Source of the DNA: Girardia tigrina
Lineage: Eukaryota
Direction of reading: 5' to 3'
NCBI GenBank assembly: GCA_001938485.1
Contig: MQRK01195906.1
Location: 29,223-78,761 of the forward strand
Length of the DNA stretch: 49,539 nucleotides
Shown here piece by piece: positions 5,831 to 44,040 of this stretch. Each line of letters opens with the position of its first letter. Position 1 is the stretch's first letter. The position numbers were made by a program, and so were the translations under genes. A model generated the notes under the pieces. It did no database searches. It was not told the origin of the DNA and saw only the letters and a program-made list of their open reading frames with translations.

Positions 5831-7444
5831 TAAAATAAATTTTAAGAAACAGAAAAAAATGAAGAAACAATGAAAGGAAAAAAATGCATACCTAATAATA
5901 TATCTAATTATATATATATTGTATTTTATAAAATAATTTATTAAAAGTAATATATTTAATAAAAATAATAATAATTTTTATTTCAATTAATAATAATAAT
6001 TAGTTTCGTTAGTTCAAATATTTTTAAATTTTATGATATTTTCATTTTTATTGTATTTATTAATTTTGAAATTTTATTTTAATTTGCTTTTAAAATTCAA
6101 TTTAATCTTGGGTTGATTGTGACAATGAACCTCTTCGAACTGCTCATTATGGGATTGACTTTTTAACTTTTCTCCTTAAAATTAATGGGTATATTTTAAA
6201 AGCTGACATTGTTATATATTATATTTATCAAAGTGCATACCTTGAGACATTTTATTGTAAAAATGTCCCCCTTAAATATGTTTTTGTTTTCTGTAATATT
6301 TTTTATAATTAAGCTAAAAATTAAAACGTTTTATAATTGCTTTTTTAAACATTTTTTAATGTGTGGCATGATACAAATAAACGTAAAAAATATAAGTAAA
6401 CATTGTTTGAATCCATCAAATATTAGTTATATCTACAAGCACAAGATTGAATTATTGTCTTAACCTGTAAATATAAACGTGTTCCAATGAAGGTGATTTT
6501 TGTGTTAACTGAATTTCATTTGAATTTCGCATGTGACTTATTAGTATTTCAACTTAGATTACATTTTAGGATGCCTAGAATAAGCTACGAGATAGCTGGA
6601 AAACCTGAAAATATCTAAGCCGGGACATAAATCCCGTCTGCATGTAGTAATCTCATGTAGAATGTCATATTTTGGCACTATACCCAAGTATAGTTGTACA
6701 AAAATCAAGCCCCGTGTTCCATCCTCCGATTCTAATGAATCTTTATCAACTTTTTCTTTTGAAATTTTTAATACTTAATTACTAATAATTTCATCATTTA
6801 GCACTTTTTTATGAAAATAGAATAATTCATAATTTGCAATTTTTTTTAATTTTGACCATATTTGAACCATTTAATTTTTCTTTCTTTTATAATGATTACT
6901 TTAATAAACCATTTATTATTTTTATACCTATTCCTAAACTAGAAAAGGAACTTGATAAATGTAATACTAACTAACTACTTATACTTTAAAACTAACATGT
7001 TAGGAAGAATGTCTTCTTGAGTGTTATGCATTAAAAATTGTGTAATCAAATACAACTTTAATACAAATCTTTTCTTTACACAAGAGAAGATTGATATAAA
7101 TTTTTTTTCCAGAAATAAATCATTCTTCCCTTTATTATTGGACGCATATAGAACTGGTTCCATGTAAATTACACCCACAAAAATTCCACCTTTTTAATGG
7201 AATGGAATGGAATACTATTTTTGGTGGTATTTTCGAGGGTGGTATCTTGATGGGGAATTTTCGGATCACCATAATTTCGACTGTGTTATTGGATTTGTTT
7301 GAAAAGATGAAGTATCGTCTCTTTAATATTCAGGTGTTTGTACATATTACATAAATATTGATAAACTTAATCCAAATACAAAGCAAATGAAGTGTCAAAT
7401 TTTTTGCTAAACAGACTTTAAATTTTAAGTGTTTGTAAAACAAT

Positions 7445-7685
7445 CTTTCTTCTTTTTTCGGACCTTAGCCCTGTGGCAGTTGGTGCACAAAATTATGCAT
7501 AAGCTTTCTCCAATGCACGAAATTTTTAGTCAGTATTTTTAAAACGTCTATGTTACATCCACTTCATTCTTTTAAATCATCTTCCGATTGTCTCTTTGAT
7601 ATTCATCTTTTTACTCTTCATTTTATCATAAGATTTGATAATATGTGTTTTTTCTTACGATGTCCATGCAATGTAATTTTAAATC
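7445..7685 (-). mobile_element. 3' remnant of an RTE-like non-LTR retrotransposon
   Basis: Minus strand reads SKRQSEDDLKE*SGCNIDVLKILTKNFVHWRKLM (compare GRPKRxWxDDIKEWxGxxxxxxxxLAxDRxxWRxL), followed by an AAG-rich tail AAAAAGAAGAAAGA. Confidence 0.55.
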
Positions 7686-8292
7686 TACTTTCTTTTGAAA
7701 AACTTACACATCAGTTATGCCAAAAATAATATTAAAATAATAGCTAAAAATAATAATACTTCAAAAATAACCAACGAAAGCGAAACTATTGAAAGACTCT
7801 TTCATAAGATCGGTACTTTGAATGATGAAATAAATTAACAGAAAAATAAAGTAAACTATCAGGCAAACATCCATAAAGACTCTGAAACACAAACTCTGTA
7901 TAATAATAGTACTAACAATATTCATTATAGAGGTTCTCGAAAATATAATAAATATAATAATTATATCCCCGTATATTTCTCTGTGGTTCACAGTGAAGAT
8001 GTCAGGATCTAATGTTCAATTTTTGTAACAATTAGATAATTGAAATCCGATTTTTGGGGCACTTGTTAGGGATAAAGGGTCGTTTGCGATATGCGATGAT
8101 CTCTTTTAATTAGTACTTCTTAAATTAACTTCATTCAAACTTGTTAAACCTCCTCGAATGAAAACAAAAATATCAGTAACAAATTAATAATTATAAATGC
8201 AAAATTTTGTCAAAATTTTGCATTCTTAAAAGTTTGTTATCTAATACGTTCAAAACTATTATCAAACTCTCTAAAGAGAGACATTAGATTTA

Positions 8293-8866
8293 CGAGGGGC
8301 GTTCCGAAAGTAAGTGGAAATGCTTATATGCGGGTGTGCGCGTGTGTGTGCATCTTACAGAGGGACATATGGCGTGGTAGCGTGATGTACTTACCAGCCA
8401 ATAGAAATCGAGCAAAAGTGGCATTGGTCCATGCAATATGTGAGCATCATAGAGGAAACTGTCATAGGCAGTGTTTTCATTTTTGTTTAACACATGGAAG
8501 ACGCAGTACGTTCTCAGCGTGCCATCATCTTTTTCCTTTGGAAAGAGGATACTCCAGTGTCTGACATTGTGCACCGCTTATCAAATGTGTTTCATGGAAG
8601 AGATCTGCAAAAGTCTGCCGTCTACAATTGGGTGCATCAATTCGAAAATGGACGTGAATCCTTGGACGACGAGGACAGAAGTGGACGTCCAGCAACGACG
8701 AGCACGGTAGAAAATGTGGAAAAATTGTAGGAGACCATCAATGCAAATCGCTGCCTTACCAAGTTTGACAGTGATGAGGATGATGAATGACATTGTATTC
8801 TTTCAATAAATGCTTTCTTGTGGTGTCGTCTCCCTTTTTTTCCACTTACTTTCGGAACGCCCCTCG
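8293..8866 (+). mobile_element. Internally deleted non-autonomous mariner (574 bp) retaining only the N-terminal HTH region
   Basis: Perfect 28-bp TIRs CGAGGGGCGTTCCGAAAGTAAGTGGAAA with TA TSD. ORF 8494-8730 (QRAIIFFLWKE...VYNWVHQFENGRESLDDEDRSGRP) is a mariner DNA-binding region. Confidence 0.93.
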
Positions 8867-9115
8867 TACTAGAAAAAAATATCATTTAAGTACGTAAATA
8901 AATGAACTATATTTTGATCATGGTAGAAGTTGTAAAAGTTAAGGAATCCTACGAAAACCAAACTAGGACATCACGTACTCTCTATATGATCTACACAGGA
9001 AAATATCTAAAAGAAATAAAACAATGAATAAATTAAATTATATTAATTCTTTTATTTGTTCTGAATTCGATAACTATGATTAAATAAATCAAAAAAATAT
9101 TAAGACAATAATAAT

Positions 9116-9121
9116 TTTATT
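9116..9121 (-). terminator. Candidate polyadenylation signal of the peptide gene
   Basis: AATAAA 8 nt after the spliced stop codon. AT-rich background makes this weak on its own. Confidence 0.4.
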
Positions 9122-9128
9122 TTCTTAT

Positions 9129-9331
9129 TCATACTGATTCTAAAAATGATTAAAAAAAGGTGGAATAATTTGTTCATTACTTTTTCCGCTAAGACCTCCT
9201 ATATGTACCCCTACTCCATATCGCGGGTAAAAATAATTCTGTCTTTTTGCCACCCATATTTCCCTCGATTCAATTTCATAACCCTGAAAGATTATAAAAC
9301 AGACACTGAAAGCTAAAATTAAAAATTTCAT
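9129..9331 (-). CDS. Two-exon small secreted peptide prohormone, 53 aa: MKFLILAFSVCFIIFQGYEIESREIWVAKR-QNYFYPRYGVGVHIGGLS-GKK-SV. Exons 9331-9181 and 9139-9129; intron 9180-9140.
   Basis: Hydrophobic signal peptide, KR dibasic site followed by Gln, and a 41-nt GTAATG...TTTTTAG intron whose removal creates Gly-Lys-Lys and a TGA stop. TATATAAA upstream and AATAAA just downstream. Confidence 0.72.
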
Positions 9332-9364
9332 ATGTTAAGATATAATGTGGCATTTCTATTCTCC

Positions 9365-9372
9365 TTTATATA
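9365..9372 (-). promoter_or_regulatory. TATA box of the small peptide gene
   Basis: TATATAAA (followed by GG) on the minus strand, ending 34 nt upstream of the ATG at 9331. Confidence 0.55.
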
Positions 9373-9625
9373 CGTTTCATTGAAGTTAATGTGTCAAAAA
9401 AGAGTGCGACCAAATATAAAGAATGAATAAAATAAATTACGGGTCCTAAGCAAATTTAAATAATATTTACTTTTATAAATAAATCAATATGTTCAGTAAA
9501 GAATAAAGGAAACCGAAGTTTTAATTTCAGTGGAAATAAAAGGATCTAAAAAAGAATTTTATAATTATTTGTAATATTATATATTGTGAAAAAATAGTTT
9601 TGTTAAAGTGTTTTAATAAATCGAT

Positions 9626-9664
9626 TACAGTACTTGTTTCGGAATATTCTCCACCATCAGCTAT
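9626..9664 (-). ncRNA. Minimal type I hammerhead ribozyme-like motif (core variant CUGAUGG)
   Basis: Minus strand: auag CUGAUGG u gga-gaauau-ucc GAAA caag UA cugu. Stems I and II can pair. Lies about 95 nt downstream of the PLE stop. Confidence 0.6.
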
Positions 9665-10962
9665 TTTAGGTACTATTATTTAAAATTGTACAAATATTTT
9701 ATTTATTTTGTATATTTAAGATATTATTGGATAATAATGGCAAAATGCTAAAAAAAATTATTTAAAAATTTTAAGATTTGAAATGGCTTTACTTTGTTCA
9801 TTTCGAATATTTATTAATGGGTTGTAGTGTCTTATTTTTAAGGATTCACAAAACTTTTTCTCATTGTGTGAATCAAAGCCCTTTTGTAAAACATGTAACT
9901 CCTCCTTTGAAATAGAAGAGATTCTATTTTTACAATGTAACAATGATCAAGAACCTTACTCGATCGTCTTGATTGTGAATGCTCACTAATTCGGGTTTTG
10001 AGATGACGATTTGTCTCTCCGATGTACGAGTTTTGACACTTATGACAAATTTATAAACCAGATTACCTTGCAATCTCCAAATCGTTTTATTATTCAAATT
10101 ATTCAAAATGAAGCTTTAAACTTTGAATGTAACTAAAACTACTTTGAAACTAATTAAATTCTTGCAAATACTTTTCCTAAATCCTTCAGAATATGGTATT
10201 TTGATATTTTTTATATTTAATTCTTTCCTAACCCGTGTTTGTGTATATAATTTGTCCAAGGTAACCTTAATGTTGTGATATATCATTTTGTTTGTGTACA
10301 TGTTATCCCTCAAGCGTCTCCTAAGAATATTTAAACTATGATGTGGGGTTTCAAAATTTGAAGACAAACTCAAAACTTTGTGAATATGATAGCCCTTTAT
10401 CATACCCTCTATTTATATGGTCTTACAGAAGCTATGTGGTGTTGTATAGAGACATGTATCTGTTGTCTTTTTGAATAATTCAGTTTGATATTTCCCATTC
10501 CTCTTAGTGACAAGAATGTCAAGAAAAGGAAGTTTTCTTACTAACTTCCAATTCTGTAGTGAATTTAAGAATAGTAGTGAATCAAGAATATTAAGAATGA
10601 TTCTTTAAGGAATTGGTTTTTGAAAACAAGAAAGATATTATCTACATATTTCTTGTGGAGCACAGGTTTTTCCGTAGGGTATGCATCAATGTTATCCTCA
10701 AGAGACGTAATAAAAACTAATGTCAATGTTGGTGCTAATGTGGAACCCATCGCGACTCAATCTTTCTGAATGTACTATTTATCATTAAAAAGAAATGGTA
10801 CATTTTTAGCCAAAAATTTAAGAAATTCTTTTATTTCATTTTTGTTTATTACTTCATTTACACCCATAATTTTTCAACGATGGGTGCATTCGTAAATAAA
10901 CTAGACATATTAAATGAGACCATACATTCAGAATCGCTTTTAGGTGTATGATCAAAATTGAA

Positions 10963-11131
10963 ATCTTTGAATTCAAAGTTATATTTGATCTTAAATTCAT
11001 TAGAAATCAAGGGATTCAATAAGGAATTAAGAACCATTGCCAAGTACAACGTTGCAAAGGTACTTGATTTCTTATTGTGTCCCTTGATTTCTAATGAATT
11101 TGAGATCAAACATAACTTTGAATTCAAAGAT
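10963..11131. repeat. Imperfect 169-bp palindrome (inverted duplication of PLE RT sequence)
   Basis: Arms ATCTTTGAATTCAAAGTTAT(A/G)TTTGATCT(T/C)AAATTCATTAGAAATCAAGGGA are reverse complements. Both strands encode LL(N/C)PLISNEFxIKxNFEFK. Confidence 0.9.
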
Positions 11132-11229
11132 AAGGAATCAAGAACCTTTTTGGTACTCTTAATTATTTGAAACTTTTCCCACAGTCTACATATATTTGCT
11201 TGGATGTCACGAACTTTAATATCCACTTT

Positions 11230-13530
11230 CTCCGAATAGTGTGCACTATCGTCTGCTCCTCCTGTCGTTTTATCGTCGTTAGAAGGATATATTTACTTCA
11301 ATGATCTATCATAGCCATTATATACCTTTTTCCTCATTGTCATTTTCCAAGGGCCACAGATATTTAATACACTTTCTCAAATGGTTTTGATGTTATTATC
11401 TTGTAGTTAACATCTTACAATAATTAAGATAACAACATTAGAACATGATCATTGGTATTTTTCAACCAATGTACATATATTTCATTTCTGATGCTGAGAT
11501 ACATGATGTACCTTCCATTTGACTACTCAACATAGTTTATATTTCTGCCCAAATTTCCGTCCAATCTATCTTGGCGTCATCTTTTATCCTTATATTTATA
11601 GTGTCTCTAATTGTTCTAAATTTTTTGTGATGATAAGAGCTTGAGTAAAATTCTTCTTCTTTGAAGAGTGTCGTTTCGAATGATTTACCTCTATCGATAA
11701 GAATCTCTTTTTGGGATCGGAATTTCCATATACGTCTGTCAAGTAATACCATCCGTTCAGCTTTCTCATCTTGATGAGCTACTGCACTCCGACTAAAATA
11801 CCTACTAAATTGATTGATTATAGCCAATATGTACTGATACCCATTAAAACTCATTTTAAATGGTCCACAGAAATTCATATAAAGCTTTTGAAAAGGTTCA
11901 TCTGCGAATTGATTAGTATTACTGTCTTGTTTTCGTTGTTAAAGTCTTTCCTTTTGACTGTTTAGGCAACATTTTACTATTCCCTTTATTATCTCTCATA
12001 TTGACATCTCGAAATTATCTTAAAAACCTTGATACAGTCAGCATAGCACAGCATCTTGTGAACGTCTTCCACGAATTCTATCCTTGTGGTTCTAATATTA
12101 GTTATTGATTGTTGTCTCAAAATCGTCTTTCAGTATCCATTTCTATGTTCTTCCTATTCTAATATCTTTTTTGATCTGATTTATTTCGTCATTTTCTTTC
12201 TGAAATATGAACTCTTTTCATTCTTCATCTTAAGTCAGGATTCTTGTTTTAATTTTACCTTTTTTAGCTTCCTCGTGTATTGTTTGACACTGCCTACATA
12301 ATTCACAAAAATTTCTCGGCATTGCATCTGCATTTGAGAGTTTTTCGTCTTTTCAATATTCCATATTCATATCCAGAGTACTAAGAAAATTTATCCACGT
12401 TTGGAATTGTGGTGTTATTGGGGTGTTATGGTTTTGAATTTATTTTAATGGTATCAATTTTTGTTTGATCCGTTTCTATATTATTCTTGCTGACAATATA
12501 TCTTAAAAATTTTGTTTTTCTGTTAAGAATTGGCACTTTTCTGACTTTATTTTTAACCATGCTTTCTGTATTTTTTCCAGTACATGTTTTATTTGTTGCA
12601 TATACTATAATTTATTTTTCACTAAAATAAAAATATCGTCTAAATATGCAACTGCTTCTTTCGAATTCAATTGTCTTAGAATTTTGACTATTAGCTCTTG
12701 GAATGTGACTGGGGCTGATGCTATTCCGCAAGGCATTTTTAAAACAATACTGCCAGTTCTTTGTTAAGAATGCTGTTTTAATCTTTGATTATTCTTCCAA
12801 CTCGACTTTGTAGTACGTATTTCCATGATTAATTGTACTAAAATATTGTGCATCATTCAGTGTATACAGCATATCACCCACATGTGACATACGAAACACT
12901 CGTAGGATGGTACTTCTATGCAACTGGTAAAAAACTACGTACACTTTAATGTCTTGCTTTTTTTCTTCCACATTCTAATGGAAAATTAAATGGGGAACTA
13001 CATTTTTCAATTATGTCATTTTCTTCGAAATTTCTAATAACATCATCCAATCTCTCACCAAAGTGTTTTGGTTGCCGATTAGCTTCACTAGTATTGGATC
13101 CCCGTGTGTTTCTTTTCTGTTTTTTTTCAATGATTTTTCCCGATATCCAACTTATCGGCCATGAATACTGATTTATACTCTGTTAAAATCTTCATTAATT
13201 GCCTGTCAATTTATTTGTTATATATTACTTTTGGATTTTATATTATTTCTTTAATTTTATTAATTTTTTGTACTATGAGTGTTCCCATTTGACCCAACAT
13301 ATTATTTGGATATGTCTCTCCACTAAGTGTCCCTAACTTACACTTATCAGAGATCTATATCGTACACAATCAATCCCATCTGGCCCTTTGATCTCGCCAG
13401 TGAAATTGATGAAGTACCTATTGGATTCTACATAATATTATAGTTAAATATATTAAGTATATGAAAGTTTGCTCAAGCTACTTCTATTTAATTAATGAAA
13501 ATTATTTCTATTGTCAATACGCTTTTTTAT
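11230..13530 (-). mobile_element. Degenerate Ty3/gypsy pol (protease, RT, RNase H region, integrase)
   Basis: RT: LNDAQYFSTI, KMPCGIASAPVTFQ, VAYLDDIFIFS. Integrase: FCGPFKMSFNGYQYILAIINQFSRY, ILIDRGKSFE, SSYHH, and a GPW variant of the GPY/F motif near 11350. Protease-like remnant at 13290-13500. Order PR-RT-IN. Confidence 0.85.
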
Positions 13531-15909: not shown

Positions 15910-17253
15910 AATAGTTCAAAATATCGAGACTAATATTTATTTTCTAATGTAACTTTACAACAAACTCACATGAATCTATAAGCAATTGTGATGTATTGTT
16001 ATTACTCCACAATTAATAAAATCATTTAAAATTTACAATAATAATAAATTAAAAATAAATTTGAATATTAAATCTAAATTTGAATAAATTAGTTTTAGAT
16101 TATTAAAAATGAATTAAAATATTAATCATCCATCTGGGTAGGAGAGACACAATCCCAAATCAACACACAACATTCAAACACAACATCAACATTCCAAATA
16201 TTACTCACATTCCTGAAATTCATTTTATCTAACTCAGAATGTTTGACAATTCTGTTTACATTACAATTTTGACATCTGTCTACAAAAGTCTTTACGTATT
16301 GAGACATTAAAGGTCTGACTGTAAAAGACAAAGACATATATACGAAGGTTAAAATTCTCAACAATTTGATCATCAAGACATAACTAGATCCTCCACAATC
16401 TGTAGAGGGGTATATTGTAGTGAAATTAGAAAAATACATATTTAATTTCTTTATTTTATTAATAGTATTTAATTATTTTTTTAAAATGTGTAAATAAAAA
16501 TGGATTGAAAAATAACTGAATGAATTCTTGAACATGTGTGAATGGATGTGATCGAGTTTGTTTTTAAAAATGAAGTGCCCCTTGGAACATGTGATACAAA
16601 TGCATATAAATTATATAAATAGTGAGTTATTTTATTAATTCTTAAATCTCGTAAGTGAAACAATGAGCAGAAAACAAATACTGTTTTGTTTGGTAATTTT
16701 GGTGTTCTACATATCTTTTGGAAATGTAGCCGGCCAGACACAAGATAAAGCTATCAGTAAGATTCAATTGATCATTAATACATTAAAATGACCGTGTACA
16801 TTTAGAGGAGAGAAATCTGAGATTATCGAAGTTGGGGTTGCAAAATGTACTTAACCAAAGACGAAAAAATATGGGGTTGAGTGAATTGAAGGAATCTCCT
16901 GGACACATATTGAAAATGATTTAGGAACATCCATATTAATATAATCAATAAAACTTTTAATGATTTATTTGATTTATTATTATCTTAAAAATGTATTCAA
17001 ACATTATTAAAATAACATTTATACTATCGAGTTTGTCAAAGATTCTTGTCCTCATTGTAAATTAATAATATTTGAGAGTCGACAATGGTGACTTTGAGAA
17101 CATTAATAAATTATTAAAGTCTTTTGTGTTGCTCGACATTATTTATCATTTAATTCAAAGATTATAATCTTTTTTGTGTAATTGTAAATTCTCTGAAACC
17201 ATTCTACAATATTCGCCATAGAAATTCATTTATTTTTGTTGGGTTCGTATTAA

Positions 17254-20323: not shown

Positions 20324-23300
20324 TGTATAAAATTATTTATTTATATAAAATTATTTATTATTTATATTCTATTATATTAAATTATTATTTATATTATATG
20401 CTTGATTACATTAAGTAGTCAAGTGAAATTAAAAATTAAATTTTGAATAAAAGTAAATCGATATACAATATATCGATCACATTTATTTAAAATTTAATTT
20501 TTGATAGACAATTATTAAATTGTCCAACACTCGTCTTTATTATTTATTTGAGAAGATATTTCGTTTATTTTATCTATCGAACGACCGAAGATTTTCACGA
20601 ACTTTTCAGAAAGAAATCAATTTCTATCGAAAAACTTCATCAACAATTTAGTTTGTGTATTTTGTGGATATTGCGTTTATGCGATTGTGATTGACCTGTT
20701 TATTTTTCTCTTTAACTGTGGTTAAAAGTAATTTGATTATTTTTTTTATTTATTTTACTATTTTTATTGTGTGTGAATTAATTCATCTTTAATTGTATAT
20801 TTTTGATGTTTGGTTAGTTAATTATAAAAATATAAAAAAACTTATATTTTCGGATTATAGAAGCTTGATCATGCTTCTCGTGACCAGGAAACCAAAAAGG
20901 AGAACAAGCCCACTACAAAATTTATTAAAATAAAAATATTCCTTTACAATTGAAATCCCTTGTTGATCTTCAGTTTTTGTATTCGACATTTTTCGTAATT
21001 CTGATTATTAAAACAAAAAAATGTTTTTGTTTTTTTTAATTAAATATTGATTTAATTTTTCTGAAAGAATTTTTTTTGTCCAACTAATTTAGGCATTTCT
21101 GCTTGATTTTTTTATAGGAAATCGGGCTTCGAATAAATTAGTTGATTAATAATTTTTTTAGTAAAATAGTAAAAAATTGAATGTTATTTACATTAGTGAA
21201 ATTTGTAAAAATTTAAATGATTTGATTATTCAAGGAAAATCAAAGCGCCACAAAAGTCCCCCCTTAAGAAGTCAGAGACGGTAAGATTATTGTTATGGTT
21301 TTGTTGGACTGAGACGGGTGGTATTGGATGATTGTTCCCATGGAGATAACCAAACTGTTTTGTGTTTTTGGGTAAGAACGTGGGCTGTGTGTGTCTCGAC
21401 TGGGTCGTCCTCAATGTGAATGCATGACTTCAGTTTGCATATATTAACTACGCTGCGTGTGCCTTTGTAGTTTATGGTCGCTGTGTTGTTCTGCACGTAA
21501 AGGTGAAGCATGCGGTAGGGACCGGTGTGTCGGGTTTGCAGAGAGCTGGGGTGTTCTCAAATCCGCCAGACGAATTTCGCGTTAATCAGGTCTTTGGAAA
21601 CGTAAACCTTGTAGGCGTCTTGCGATGATGAGGAATTATCTAAATTTTTGAAATAACTTTGTGTCTGTTCCAGGTGTTCATCGTTACTGGGGCTGTCACT
21701 GAAGAATAATTCGTTCACAAGTGAAGTGTTTGAACAAAATAGCATTTGAACCGGTGAGGAGCCATGGCGGCTGGGAATGGATGCTTCGTGGACTGGTATT
21801 TGGTGATAAGCCTTGGCCAAATCGAGTGACGAGAAAATTTTGCACCACTCAAAACGTTGCAAAGTATCGATGATTAATGGCATCGGGTATGAATCAGGCG
21901 TTGTAACCTGATTCAACCTTCTGTATTCCCCGCATCGGATGGAACCATCCTTCTTGTGCACGATCTGAAGCGGTGCTGCCCAGGGTGAACTGGAGCGTCG
22001 TACAATGCCCGAAGTTTCGAGTTCCGAGAATTTTTTCTCGGCAAGAATTCGCTGTTCTTGAGAAAGTTCCCGGCGGCGTTGTCGTATGGGTGCGCATGGC
22101 CTGGTGATGATCAAGTGGTTTGATATGCAACTACCCGAGAATGAACTCACGGTGGGAAAAAAAGCTCACAACGATGTTGGGAAAGTTTAGTTCAATGAAT
22201 TGATTTGGGTTAGACAACAACGTACACACTGGAGTGTTGGATGGGGTGTGACGCGCCGTTGTTGATTGTTGAAGTGGAAGAAGTCTCCTGTTCCTGCAGT
22301 CTATGAGCAAACCGAAGTGGGCGAAGAAATATGCCCCGAGAATTGGCTGAGTGACATCGGCAACCGTGAACGTCCATTGGAAAAGTTTATCCAATGGGGC
22401 AAGGTGAAATGATATACTGACTGAACCATAGGTATAAACGATTGAATCGTTGGCGGCCGTGAGACGTGAGACTGTGCGTCGAGTCTTTGGTTGCATGCTT
22501 TTGGGCAAGACCGAAATGGCGGAGCCCGTATCGATTAAAAATGTCAATCTGGTGGTGTGTGGAGCGGTGACGGTGGCATCGGACAAGAAAATTCCGCAGC
22601 ATATGTCATCGTCTTCTGTGTCGGCTGCGAAGACCGAAGACGAACCTAGTTTTTTGACGGCTTATAAGTACAGTCAGGCTCGCATCGTTTCATCTAATCC
22701 CCTAGGCGGGAGTGATAAACACAGACTGTGTCCATTTCCAATTCGTTTGTTTGGTCCTTCCAGGTGCATTCTGGCAGGCATTTCCTTGCCTCTCGACCGA
22801 ACTTCGAATGACACCAACACACATTTGCACTGGGTGATCGATTTTGGCTTGTTGCTAAACGTCTCTAATGGAATTTTAGTAACCTCATGGTACTGAGTGC
22901 CGTTATTTGTGTCGTGATTGTTTGCATTTGTGTCTGTAATGCCTCAATATGTGTAGAGAGTGTATCTGGTGCTGTGGTTGAGGTTAATTGTATCTGTTGT
23001 GTGTTCACAACAAAAAATGTGTTTGTTTCGGTCGGTTGTGTGGCCATGATGTTGTCTGCAATTTTGGCAAGTTCAGTAAGATCGATGACATTAGTGCCAG
23101 GAAGAACGGCTTGAGCCAGTGGTGTAAGTGACCGCAGAAAAAAATGCTTAAGTAGATCGGAATGAGATCCATTAGTGACTCTTCGGTGTATAGTTTCTAA
23201 GTCTGTCACGATCTTGTTTAAAAAGGAAAAGGGTTTCTGGTGACCAATGTATTTGTGATTTGAAGTATGTGGCGAAAATGTCGTCGATTGAAAGTTGAGA

Positions 23301-28790: not shown

Positions 28791-30073
28791 TTACGTGTAT
28801 AACTTAGTTTTTTGGATTTTATAAGAGATGGTGTAACCTTTGTAATAAGCATTATTTTACAGTCGTACGTACAGATTTTTAAAGTGCTGAAATCGAGGCA
28901 TAAAATTAAGTAGATCATTGACCTTAAATGCGTCATAAACATATTTTTAATCACGTTTTAGCATGACAACTTTCATACCAACAAACATCATTTGCGGGAA
29001 GCACTACTGTTTTGCTTTAATCAAAAGAAAAAAGCTGCAGACAGTTTTCGGCTTCTTGATGAAACTTATGGTCAACATGCACCAACTCAACAGACTTGCG
29101 AGAAGCGGTATAAACGTTTCAAAAGTGGAGATTTCGACGTAAGTGACAAAGAGCGTTCCGATCAACCAAAAAGATTCGAAGATGAAGATTTGGAATCATT
29201 ACTGAAGGAAGATTCTATTCAAACAGAGTAACAGCTTGCAAAACAGTTAAATGTTACTCAAGCAGCCATAAGTAAACGTCTACATGCTATGAAAATGATT
29301 CAAAAAGAAGGAAAGTGGATACCACATGAATTGAATCAAGCCAACATTGAAAGTCGATTACTGATATTCAATTCATTGCTCACAAGACAAAGAAGATGGT
29401 CGTTTTTGCCTAATATTGTGACTGGAGATGAAAAATGGATTTATTATGTTAACTCTAAACGCAAGAAATCGTGGGTCCATCCCGGCGAACCGTCCACGTC
29501 AACAGCAAAAAGAAACATTCATGGAAGCAAGGTTATGTTGTGCATTTCGTGGGATCAGAAAGGTGTACTGTACTATGAGCTGCTGAATTCGAATGAAACT
29601 GTTAATGCAGAACGTTACCAACAACAGTTAATGAAATTGAACGATGCATTGAAGAAAAAACGTCCTATTCCAGCCAACAAACAGCGCACAGTGATTTTGC
29701 TCCATGACAATGCTCGGTCCCATGTCGAAAAACAAGTAAAAAAACACGTTGGAAGCACTTAAATGGGACATTCTACCGCATGCTGCCTATTCACCAGATT
29801 GTGCCCCATCAGATTATCATCTGTTCCGATTAATGCAAAGCGCTCTTCGGGACCAGCACTTCAGAAACCAGGAACATATAAAAATGGCTGGAACAATGGA
29901 TCGCAACAAAAGACAAAAACTTTTTTTCGATGGAATTTATAATTTGCCTGAAAGATGGTCGAAAGTCATAATTAACGATGGAAAATATTTTGATTAGAAT
30001 AAAACTTATTATGTCATATAAATAAACTTGTCTGTTCTGCAAAACAATCCAAAAAACTAAGTTATACACCTAA
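28791..30073 (+). mobile_element. Full-length mariner (mauritiana/Mos1-like, DD34D), inactive
   Basis: 28-bp TIRs TTA(C/G)GTGTATAACTTAGTTTTTTGGATT, TA TSD, 1283 bp. Confidence 0.95.
28963..29997 (+). pseudogene. Mariner transposase pseudogene
   Basis: RFKSGDFDV, WIPHEL, IVTGDEKWIYY, LLHDNARSH, HAAYSPDCAPSDYHLF and DGKYFD. Interrupted by a stop at 29229-31 and frameshifts. Confidence 0.95.
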
Positions 30074-42580: not shown

Positions 42581-43470
42581 TATATATATATATATATACG
42601 TTACAAATATTTTTTATTAAATTATTATTCGAAACCTTTTTTTGGATTTTACTTTTTGTTTCAAACTTTATTGAATAAATAAAAAGAATCACTTTAACAG
42701 CTCCATAAATTTTATAACTATTGAATATAAGTGAATAGAAATGGAAATATTATTTATCTGTTGACGAAAATAAAATCATTGAAAATTCAAGCAACAACCA
42801 CAACAAATAAAATAAAAATTTAAATATATTTGATGTTCTTGTTAATATTAATAAACATAAAATCATTGGAAAAAACGATGTTTTAGTCCATTACAACTAA
42901 ATATTATGTTCCTTCTTTCGGATTCCCCTGTTCCAAATATTTATTTCTTGATTCTCTAGGGAATATTATTTGTCAGATTTTAGAGTGTTTCTGACAAATT
43001 TGAATGTTTACATTTTTCATCTATTGTTTCGCTGCAAGAGATGTTTCAGACGCTTCACTTCAGTTATTTTATATTTTCCTTATTAATTGTGCAATATTCT
43101 GAAATAGTAAATTATACTCTTTTCTTTTCCAGTCTCAAACGACTTACTAGAAGTATTTCTATAATATTCTTTTCTACAGTGGTTTATACATTATCACTAT
43201 AAATTTTATTTTAATAACATGAAAAGTAAAAAAACAGGTAGAAAATAAAAAATAGTTAACTGTATATTATAAAAACAAAATTAATCCATTTTGAAATATA
43301 TATAAAGACGATACATGTCGATGGATCATCATCTTGTTGGGACCCTTGGATTCTCTCCATCTTCTGCTATAATCCAGGTGCATTCACAATGCAGGTATTG
43401 GAGAGATTGAAGATTTCCTCGGGTCTTAAAAATATAAAAATATATTATTAATAATAATACAATTCTAATA

Positions 43471-44040
43471 TTGGGTTGGTCGAAAAATAATGGCGGNNNN
43501 NNNNNNNNNNNNNNNNNNNNNNNNNNNNNNNNNNNNNNNNNNNNNNNNNNNNNNNNNNNNNNNNNNNNNNNNNNNNNNNNNNNNNNNNNNNNNNNNNNNN
43601 NNNNNNNNNNNNNNNNNNNNNNNNNNNNNNNNNNNNNNNNNNNNNNNNNNNNNNNNNNNNNNNNNNNNNNNNNNNNNNNNNNNNNNNNNNNNNNNNNNNN
43701 NNNNNNNNNNNATGCCTGAAAAAGTAGAAGTCCGTTGGCGAGAGGTCTGGTGAATATGGTGGATGAAGCAGGGTTTCATAGCCCAACTCATTAATCTTTT
43801 GAAGAGTCACTTTTGAAATATGAGGTCTAGTGTTATCATGAAGGATGGGACTTTTTCGATTGACCAATCCCGGACAAAGGGTTTTCAATTTTTTATGCAT
43901 TTCATCAATTTCATAACAGTACCTCTCCACTGTGATTGTTTCGCCTGGATTCAAGAAACTATAGTGGATGATTCAAGCATCACACCACCAAACTGTCACC
44001 ATAACCTTACGGGGTGTTAGTTTCGGTTTTGGAAAGTTTT
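43471..44040 (-). mobile_element. 5'-truncated second copy of the same cecropia-like mariner (N gap 43497-43711)
   Basis: TIR TTGGGTTGGTCGAAAAATAATGGCGG after TA. FPKPKLTPRKVMVTVWW, PGETITVERYC and HPPYSPDLSPTD are nearly identical to 42104-42335. Confidence 0.9.

Follow-up and report, generated by a model that had tools for sequence, protein, structure and literature searches.

The window analysed here is the whole stretch of DNA presented above, 49,539 nucleotides long and 28% GC. Within it, the minus strand from 9372 to 9116 carries the elements of what could be a very small gene. The first of these is a TATA box, TATATAAA, at 9372-9365 (minus strand), whose position suggests a promoter role. 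It lies about 26-30 nt 5' of CACATT (9348-9343), which resembles an initiator (Inr), and 34-41 nt 5' of an ATG at 9331-9329. That ATG is the first in the proposed mRNA of about 240 nt, and it starts a continuous open reading frame (ORF) of 63 codons plus stop (9331-9140, minus strand). Another ATG, at 9353 (minus strand), opens an ORF of 25 codons only and is probably upstream of the transcription start. Beyond the stop comes a poly(A) signal, AATAAA, at 9121-9116 (minus strand). The TATA box, the ATG, the ORF and AATAAA stand in the order and at the spacing that are right for a gene, and the ORF makes up about 80% of the unit. Direct reading of the letters bears out every motif position that a sequence-only reading of this DNA had claimed for the minus strand.

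The same reading had proposed that the ORF is laid out as a secretory pre-pro-peptide. This also stands; leader, spacer, Lys-Arg and N-terminal Gln are all there. Codons 1-17 (9331-9281, minus strand) specify a signal-peptide-like leader built of Met-Lys, 13 uncharged hydrophobic residues and Gln-Gly, a likeness that comes from a heuristic test only; the Phe at -3 is unfavourable for cleavage after Gly17. Codons 18-30 (9280-9242) specify an acidic spacer of 13 residues that ends in Lys-Arg (9247-9242). Next is the predicted core peptide, QNYFYPRYGVGVHIGGLS (codons 31-48, 9241-9188), whose 18 residues start with Gln, are rich in Gly and Tyr, and are identical in all four of the runs described below. 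With one Arg and one His, it is neither clearly cationic nor clearly amphipathic. Gly49-Lys50 (9187-9182) offers a candidate amidation donor and a single basic residue, with Ser next in the RNA, and the frame closes with an AT-rich tail of 13 residues (codons 51-63, to 9140).

Several mature products could be drawn from such a precursor. Amidated after trimming at Gly49-Lys50, the peptide pGlu...Ser-NH2 would have a predicted monoisotopic mass of 2007.995 Da, and its Gly-extended form one of 2066.001 Da. Longer products would have predicted monoisotopic masses of 2524.213 Da (pGlu 31-53) and 3764.853 Da (pGlu 31-63). That the amidated 18-mer in particular is the mature product, as the sequence-only reading had it, is distinctly doubtful.

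How readily might such a layout appear by chance? Taken singly, several of its features are weak; their combination is stronger than chance. An ORF of at least 63 codons read from the first ATG appears in 0.35% of composition-matched simulations of 247 nt, and for an ORF of this length the simulations give 0.2-0.35% overall. Complete ORFs of at least 63 codons are found in 1.1% of the real 247-nt segments of the 49.5-kb window, across which ORFs of at least 60 codons are not rare. Signal-peptide-like starts, scored by the heuristic, are seen in 5 of the 125 ORFs of at least 40 amino acids in the window (4%). The TATA motif occurs 18 times on both strands of the window against 13 expected, and therefore is not special by itself. 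The GC content of the core (9181-9331) is 34%, that of the tail and of both flanks is 22%, and the rise is limited to codons 1-50 of the minus-strand ORF.

These numbers bear on an alternative that we consider somewhat unlikely, and that deserves to be weighed at each step. Here, polymerase II would produce, at a low level, a short transcript between transposon remnants that is non-coding or "junk", and both the ORF and its prohormone grammar would be accidents of composition. A 4% frequency of leader-like starts suits this view, as does DNA in which TATATAAA and AATAAA are common. Against it, the ORF length (about 0.3%) and the leader (about 4%) are jointly rare inside an island of cover that was defined independently of them, and the rise in GC keeps to the first 50 codons. 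Codon usage is uninformative, which leaves the non-coding view some room: with actin and HSP70 loci as the training set, which itself ranges from 37 to 62% GC, random ORFs score higher on average than this one. Some of the HSP70-like loci (L020, L022, L025 and L027 of assembly G000) have a GC content of 50-62%, versus 37-41% in the actins and the other HSP70s; these could be contaminant or foreign contigs, or could reflect strong GC heterogeneity.

The concern that the sequence might be part of a high-copy repeat is excluded. Searches with DNA, protein and a degenerate pattern find the locus as a single copy in the 1.43-Gb assembly, where it has one full match. The search for paralogues in the same genome returned only noise at E 2.6-7, and the degenerate pattern found less than its reversed control.

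Evidence for expression comes from public contig sets compared with positions 7000-11500 (n=4). Three of these, X1-X3, derive from one sample carrying organism label A, and the fourth, X5, from a different study carrying label B. Their labelling as "RNA" is a guess, and they may be DNA; the contigs carry no strand. Five runs each contain 29-39% of the sampled words from 9000-9500, and the four used here are among these five. In each of the four runs, one whole short contig matches the locus at 99-100% (9113-9314, 9114-9326, 9133-9323 and 9107-9324), and the union of these contigs is a transcribed island at 9107-9326, its strand not given by the contigs. Depth across the island is 3-9 in the four runs, and cover is zero in all four over the unique flanks at 8963-9113 and 9416-9566. 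On the 3' side of the minus-strand unit, the furthest contig ends (9107-9114) lie 3-9 nt past AATAAA. On the 5' side, the furthest contig stops at 9326, which is 5 nt short of the ATG, and 0 of the 4 contigs reaches it. With contigs in four of four runs and silent unique flanks, the locus looks like a discrete small transcription unit, and the earlier claim of a small, stand-alone and unannotated expressed unit holds.

Could the island be something other than RNA? The four runs might be DNA, for example from libraries that were enriched or of low coverage, in which case the island would reflect a low-copy repeat or an artefact of capture. This fits with a guessed run type and with nearby cover that is mostly from multi-copy elements; the other covered stretches, 8291-8868 and 9718-10623, are such elements, represented by many variant contigs. 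It does not fit with the single-copy nature of the locus, nor with the way in which one and the same span of some 200 nt, ragged at its ends and flanked by silent unique sequence, recurs in four of four runs. Further, island depth does not track the depth of neighbouring repeats. The ratio between the two varies by run, with X5 having the highest repeat cover and the lowest island cover. Contig sets of 30-41 Mb, set against a genome of 1.43 Gb, also have the size of transcriptomes. An origin of the island in DNA is hence the least credible of the explanations discussed here.

Strandless contigs leave a question of direction. On the plus strand, and in the same register as the minus-strand ORF, an antisense ORF of 56 codons runs from 9146 to 9316. 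The RNA might accordingly be a plus-strand transcript whose coding part, if it has one, is this ORF, which fits within the island. By eye, its stop is closely followed by ATTAAA at 9318-9323 (plus strand), and 9081-9090 (plus strand) is AT-rich and TATA-like. The antisense ORF is, however, one without a leader, a Pfam match or any other recognisable feature, and in X5 it is frameshifted at codon 3. The exact TATATAAA and exact AATAAA, at proper distances, are on the minus strand. These facts make a plus-strand RNA very improbable. That both strands are open in one register does point to local composition, and counts to this extent in favour of a non-coding transcript.

The sequence-only reading had gone further in two respects, and in both the contigs speak against it. 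It had proposed two exons, separated by an intron of 41 nt at 9180-9140 (minus strand; GT at 9180-9179, AG at 9141-9140), which covers part of codon 51, the codons through 63, and the stop. Removal of these 41 nt would give the ending Gly-Lys-Lys-Ser-Val-stop, with exon 2 coding for part of a Lys, Ser and Val only. In the contigs the segment is retained: four of four follow the genome without a break across 9140-9180, extending more than 31 nt to each side of the proposed donor, and none of the four runs lists a 9181/9139 joint. In every run, then, the unspliced form is at the least the predominant one, and the Gly-Lys-Lys-Ser-Val ending does not describe the main RNA. The Gly-dibasic amidation signal that had been claimed falls with the intron. 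The RNA reads Gly-Lys-Ser-Asn-Glu, a monobasic site in which Gly-Lys is followed by Ser, and Gly-Lys-Lys exists in the unsupported spliced form only.

An intron of 41 nt would not be absurd for this genome, where introns are very short. Those in actin and HSP70 loci, a small sample, measure 46, 47, 51, 57 and 72 nt, and have GTAA-type donors and TAG, CAG or AAG acceptors. The genome holds many actin genes; the 46-nt actin intron was read directly, and the remaining actin and HSP70 introns were reconstructed. Thus, splicing of 9180-9140 in some cells might still produce a minor or conditional isoform, encoding a canonically amidated 18-mer. The donor AAA/GTAATG and acceptor TTTTTAG/AA do resemble those of a true intron, CAA/GTAATT...CATCTAG/GG (a slash marks the splice point), introns of 46-72 nt are normal here, and the segment has the GC content of the flanks (22%). 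Rare variants are also dropped from contigs, and the two differences seen in X5, described below, both lie inside the segment, where splicing would make them silent. Against this, the segment is kept in all four contigs, and its 41 nt are below the shortest measured intron (46 nt, in that small sample). The pair is also one chosen from 13 possible GT..AG pairs in the tail, the choice having been the one that gives the neatest ending. Such an isoform is quite improbable. Enumeration also turned up a different GT..AG pair that would give Pro-Arg-Tyr-Gly-Lys; it was rejected, no alternative pair being backed by contigs. In DNA of this kind, a GT-AG pair and a prohormone ending that looks "neat" are easily assembled by eye, which calls for caution; at this locus, the neat version found no backing in the RNA evidence.

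Some information about constraint comes from X5, which carries the other organism label. Compared with the window, its contig (depth 3.2) has two differences only, both within 9140-9180. The first, G>A at 9172, changes codon 54 from CAA to TAA, ending the ORF at ...Gly-Lys-Ser-Asn-Glu-stop and leaving 53 residues. The second is an extra A behind 9151, which has no effect on the shortened minus-strand ORF and shifts the frame of the antisense ORF at its codon 3. Because both differences lie after codon 53, everything from the leader to Gly-Lys is unchanged under both labels. The tail thus varies as non-coding sequence would, and the frame of the antisense ORF is not preserved, with two differences being, of course, few. 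The chance that both would fall within 41 of 219 nt is (41/219)^2, or about 3.5%. For a non-coding transcript this cuts both ways: an ORF of polymorphic length and a depth of 3-9 are what it might be expected to show, but identity of the first 53 codons under both labels, with both differences confined to the tail, is not.

Searches for relatives gave little. In line with the earlier remark that the peptide was not recognised as one of a named family, none could be assigned, and neither a homologue nor a Pfam family was found for the ORF. Word searches returned no homologue; Pfam returned no family at E 0.01 and none up to E 10. No match came from exact look-ups of the ORF in its full, truncated and contig-start forms or of the antisense ORF, nor from a full-text literature search for the core peptide. 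The ORF used in the searches contains exon 1 of the two-exon model. Blank searches for homologues and paralogues are, of course, equally what a non-coding transcript would give. A structured RNA is not indicated, as no Rfam family matches the locus and its fold is no better than that of shuffled sequences (z -0.31). Look-alikes in the ESM Atlas score at best 0.86, which is in the chance range; they include small prohormone clusters, with a Neuropeptide F cluster at 0.80.

An exhaustive HMMER search against 1.84 billion representatives produced a single match (P0001), with E 6e-9. The matching protein is a 344-residue tandem-repeat ORF on a bacterial metagenome contig (L007, 3001-4035), located between efflux and secretion genes. 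It was rejected as a homologue and regarded as a chance look-alike, because five weak repeats add up to its score; with a short query, such repeat arrays can push up the whole-sequence score in HMMER. The repeats contain YSFPRSGVGTHIGTL, in which 10 of 15 residues are as in the core peptide.

Even without relatives, the ORF can be compared in kind with known peptide precursors. Planarian prohormone genes have been recognised by a signal sequence, by flanking basic sites, and by a length of less than 200 amino acids (Collins et al., 2010, PMC2953531). The ORF here has 63 codons, and with no Pfam family and no true homologue it is unlike other kinds of gene. Its leader is signal-like by the heuristic test, as in the planarian spp and npp genes (secreted peptide prohormone and neuropeptide precursor), and its flanking sites are Lys-Arg on the N-terminal side and Gly-Lys followed by Ser on the C-terminal side. 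Mass spectrometry of planarian peptides, in the part of Table S3 considered here (PMC2953531), includes cleavage after Lys-Arg to give pyroglutamate, as in 1020HH-2 and NPP-2, and amidation from GKR, GR or a terminal G. For 1020HH-2, the peptide seen is KR.pQSYLTGGIRY.KK, and the ORF here likewise has Gln directly after Lys-Arg. The proposed KR-Gln step therefore has precedent in planarians, whereas the Gly-Lys-Ser site has none within that part of Table S3 (PMC2953531).

The spp and npp peptides resemble the predicted core in being short and in containing Tyr and Gly, and many of their genes resemble the present locus in being lineage-restricted and missed by annotation. There are differences too. 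The ORF here has one predicted peptide copy; its C-terminal flank is a single Lys and not KR, KK or GKR; and the planarian peptides are supported by mass spectrometry, whereas the present one is known from sequence and contigs. No similarity to the listed Schmidtea prohormones was found, and in the supplements of PMC2953531 the only matches to motifs of the ORF are NPY-5 and NPY-7.

The last of these results raises the possibility of membership in the NPY/NPF superfamily (planarian npy-1 to npy-11; PF00159, Hormone_3), where, as here, a leader precedes a short peptide. Planarian NPY-5 and NPY-7 end in RPRY-Gly, and the core peptide shares Pro-Arg-Tyr-Gly with them. Membership was rejected on several grounds. 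Here, the sequence is Tyr-Pro-Arg-Tyr-Gly-Val, so that the first Arg of RxR[FY] is replaced by Tyr and the Gly is followed by neither a basic site nor a stop. The family has an intron inside the Arg codon just before the aromatic residue, but the contigs here are co-linear across 9220-9200. Hormone_3 (PF00159) is unmatched even at E 10. The lengths also differ, with NPY-type peptides having about 36-40 residues and the ORF here having 21 residues only between leader and Tyr.

Two other families invite comparison. RYamides are found in arthropods and other protostomes, pQGFYSQRY-NH2 being an example. We take the first eight residues of the core to be RYamide-like, with their Gln start, aromatic residues in the middle, and Arg-Tyr followed by Gly. 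In the core, however, no basic residue follows that Gly, so no RYamide would be released, and the genome does not look like that of an arthropod. The second family is that of secreted Gly/Tyr-rich antimicrobial peptides, whose layout is presumably that of this ORF, with a leader followed by an acidic pro-piece and then by a C-terminal peptide rich in Gly and Tyr. The ORF differs from them in having no homology, and in a core that is not clearly cationic or amphipathic.

With these comparisons in hand, the reading that we prefer, to which we assign a probability of roughly 0.5, is that the locus is a tiny, TATA-driven, single-exon gene for a secreted pre-pro-peptide without known relatives. We infer the minus strand, translation, secretion and every processing step. 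The gene would be transcribed from about 9345 to about 9100 on the minus strand to give an mRNA of about 240 nt with a single exon. This would encode a secretory pre-pro-peptide of 63 residues, or of 53 in the second strain or label. The leader (residues 1-17) would route the protein into the secretory pathway, where a prohormone convertase may cleave after Lys29-Arg30, and the newly N-terminal Gln31 might then cyclise to pyroglutamate. At the C-terminus, trimming at Gly49-Lys50 could lead to the amidated 18-mer, or a longer form could be kept. What results would be a signalling or defence peptide, restricted to its lineage, in a flatworm of planarian type. The 28% GC, the many actin genes and the introns of 46-72 nt are flatworm-like. 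An arthropod origin was rejected: Chitin_bind_4, hemocyanin and spidroin gave no matches, though blanks of this sort carry little weight, and the intron lengths pointed to a flatworm.

This peptide-gene reading is favoured by the rarity of the ORF length, the leader-like start (4%), the GC rise in the core and the pattern of differences in X5. Whole short contigs that recur between silent flanks, over motifs in the right order, favour it as well, as does the planarian precedent for KR-pGlu and amidation found in the part of that study considered here (PMC2953531). It is weakened by an ATG that lies outside strandless contigs of depth 3-9, by the monobasic C-terminal flank, and by the weak -3/-1 context of the leader, given that leaders rich in Phe, Ile and Leu arise easily at 28% GC. 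The lack of a paralogue and of a homologue, a codon usage that gives no support, and look-alikes at chance level weaken it further.

A bolder version can be stated, which we hold tentatively and think unlikely. In it, the locus is an orphan, possibly recently born, intronless planarian gene of about 240 nt for a hormone or defence peptide, with a multi-copy retroelement-like remnant on one side and a mariner-type MITE on the other. The 18-mer, started by pyroglutamate and amidated at its C-terminus, would be the product, and the stop gained at codon 54 would mark a functional boundary.

Gene finders overlook an intronless gene of 240 nt, and most size-selection steps in RNA-seq lose it. If real, the locus would add one signalling or defence peptide, and would be an example of a gene hiding in transposon-rich, AT-rich DNA. 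The kind is a familiar one: in their nervous system, glands and germline, planarians use small peptide precursors by the dozen that are restricted to the lineage. It is plausible that the locus is an orphan member of this known kind, the lineage-restricted secreted peptide precursors of planarians. For many of the small planarian peptide precursors, discovery took peptidomics and genome searches together (PMC2953531).

For the most part, the window has the look of non-coding DNA rich in transposons. Pfam identifies transposon debris at 29289-29762 (plus strand), 43448-43954 (minus strand) and 21557-22150 (minus strand), comprising a fragment of a mariner-type transposase (PF01359, E 1e-27), another that matches more weakly, and a piece of reverse transcriptase that stays below the Pfam cut-off. 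Nearer the small unit, a MITE-like element of 578 nt occupies 8291-8868, with perfect 30-nt terminal inverted repeats at 8291-8320 and 8839-8868; mariner-type transposase fragments are found elsewhere in the window. In four of four runs the element is represented by several variant contigs at depths of 13-190, and hence is multi-copy and either transcribed or carried within transcripts.

On the other side, directly upstream of the small unit, multi-copy sequence extends over 9718-11226, with many diverged contigs at 9718-10623. To the eye, minus-strand ORF pieces here suggest a Penelope-like remnant, with a YVDN box like that of reverse transcriptases at 10565-10750 and a stretch resembling GIY-YIG at 9930-10106; Pfam gave no confirmation of it. 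Within the same region, 10963-11131 forms a long hairpin, with zero cover in the four runs, made of two 83-nt arms that are 88% complementary around a loop of 3 nt. Farther away, a second candidate bears on the earlier claim that the small unit is the only convincing intact gene in the window: an ORF of 42 codons that matches no Pfam family, at 16663-16788 (plus strand), has a second TATATAAA 44 nt 5' of it (16612-16619, plus strand), and begins with a textbook leader that ends in Val-Ala-Gly and is followed by Gln.
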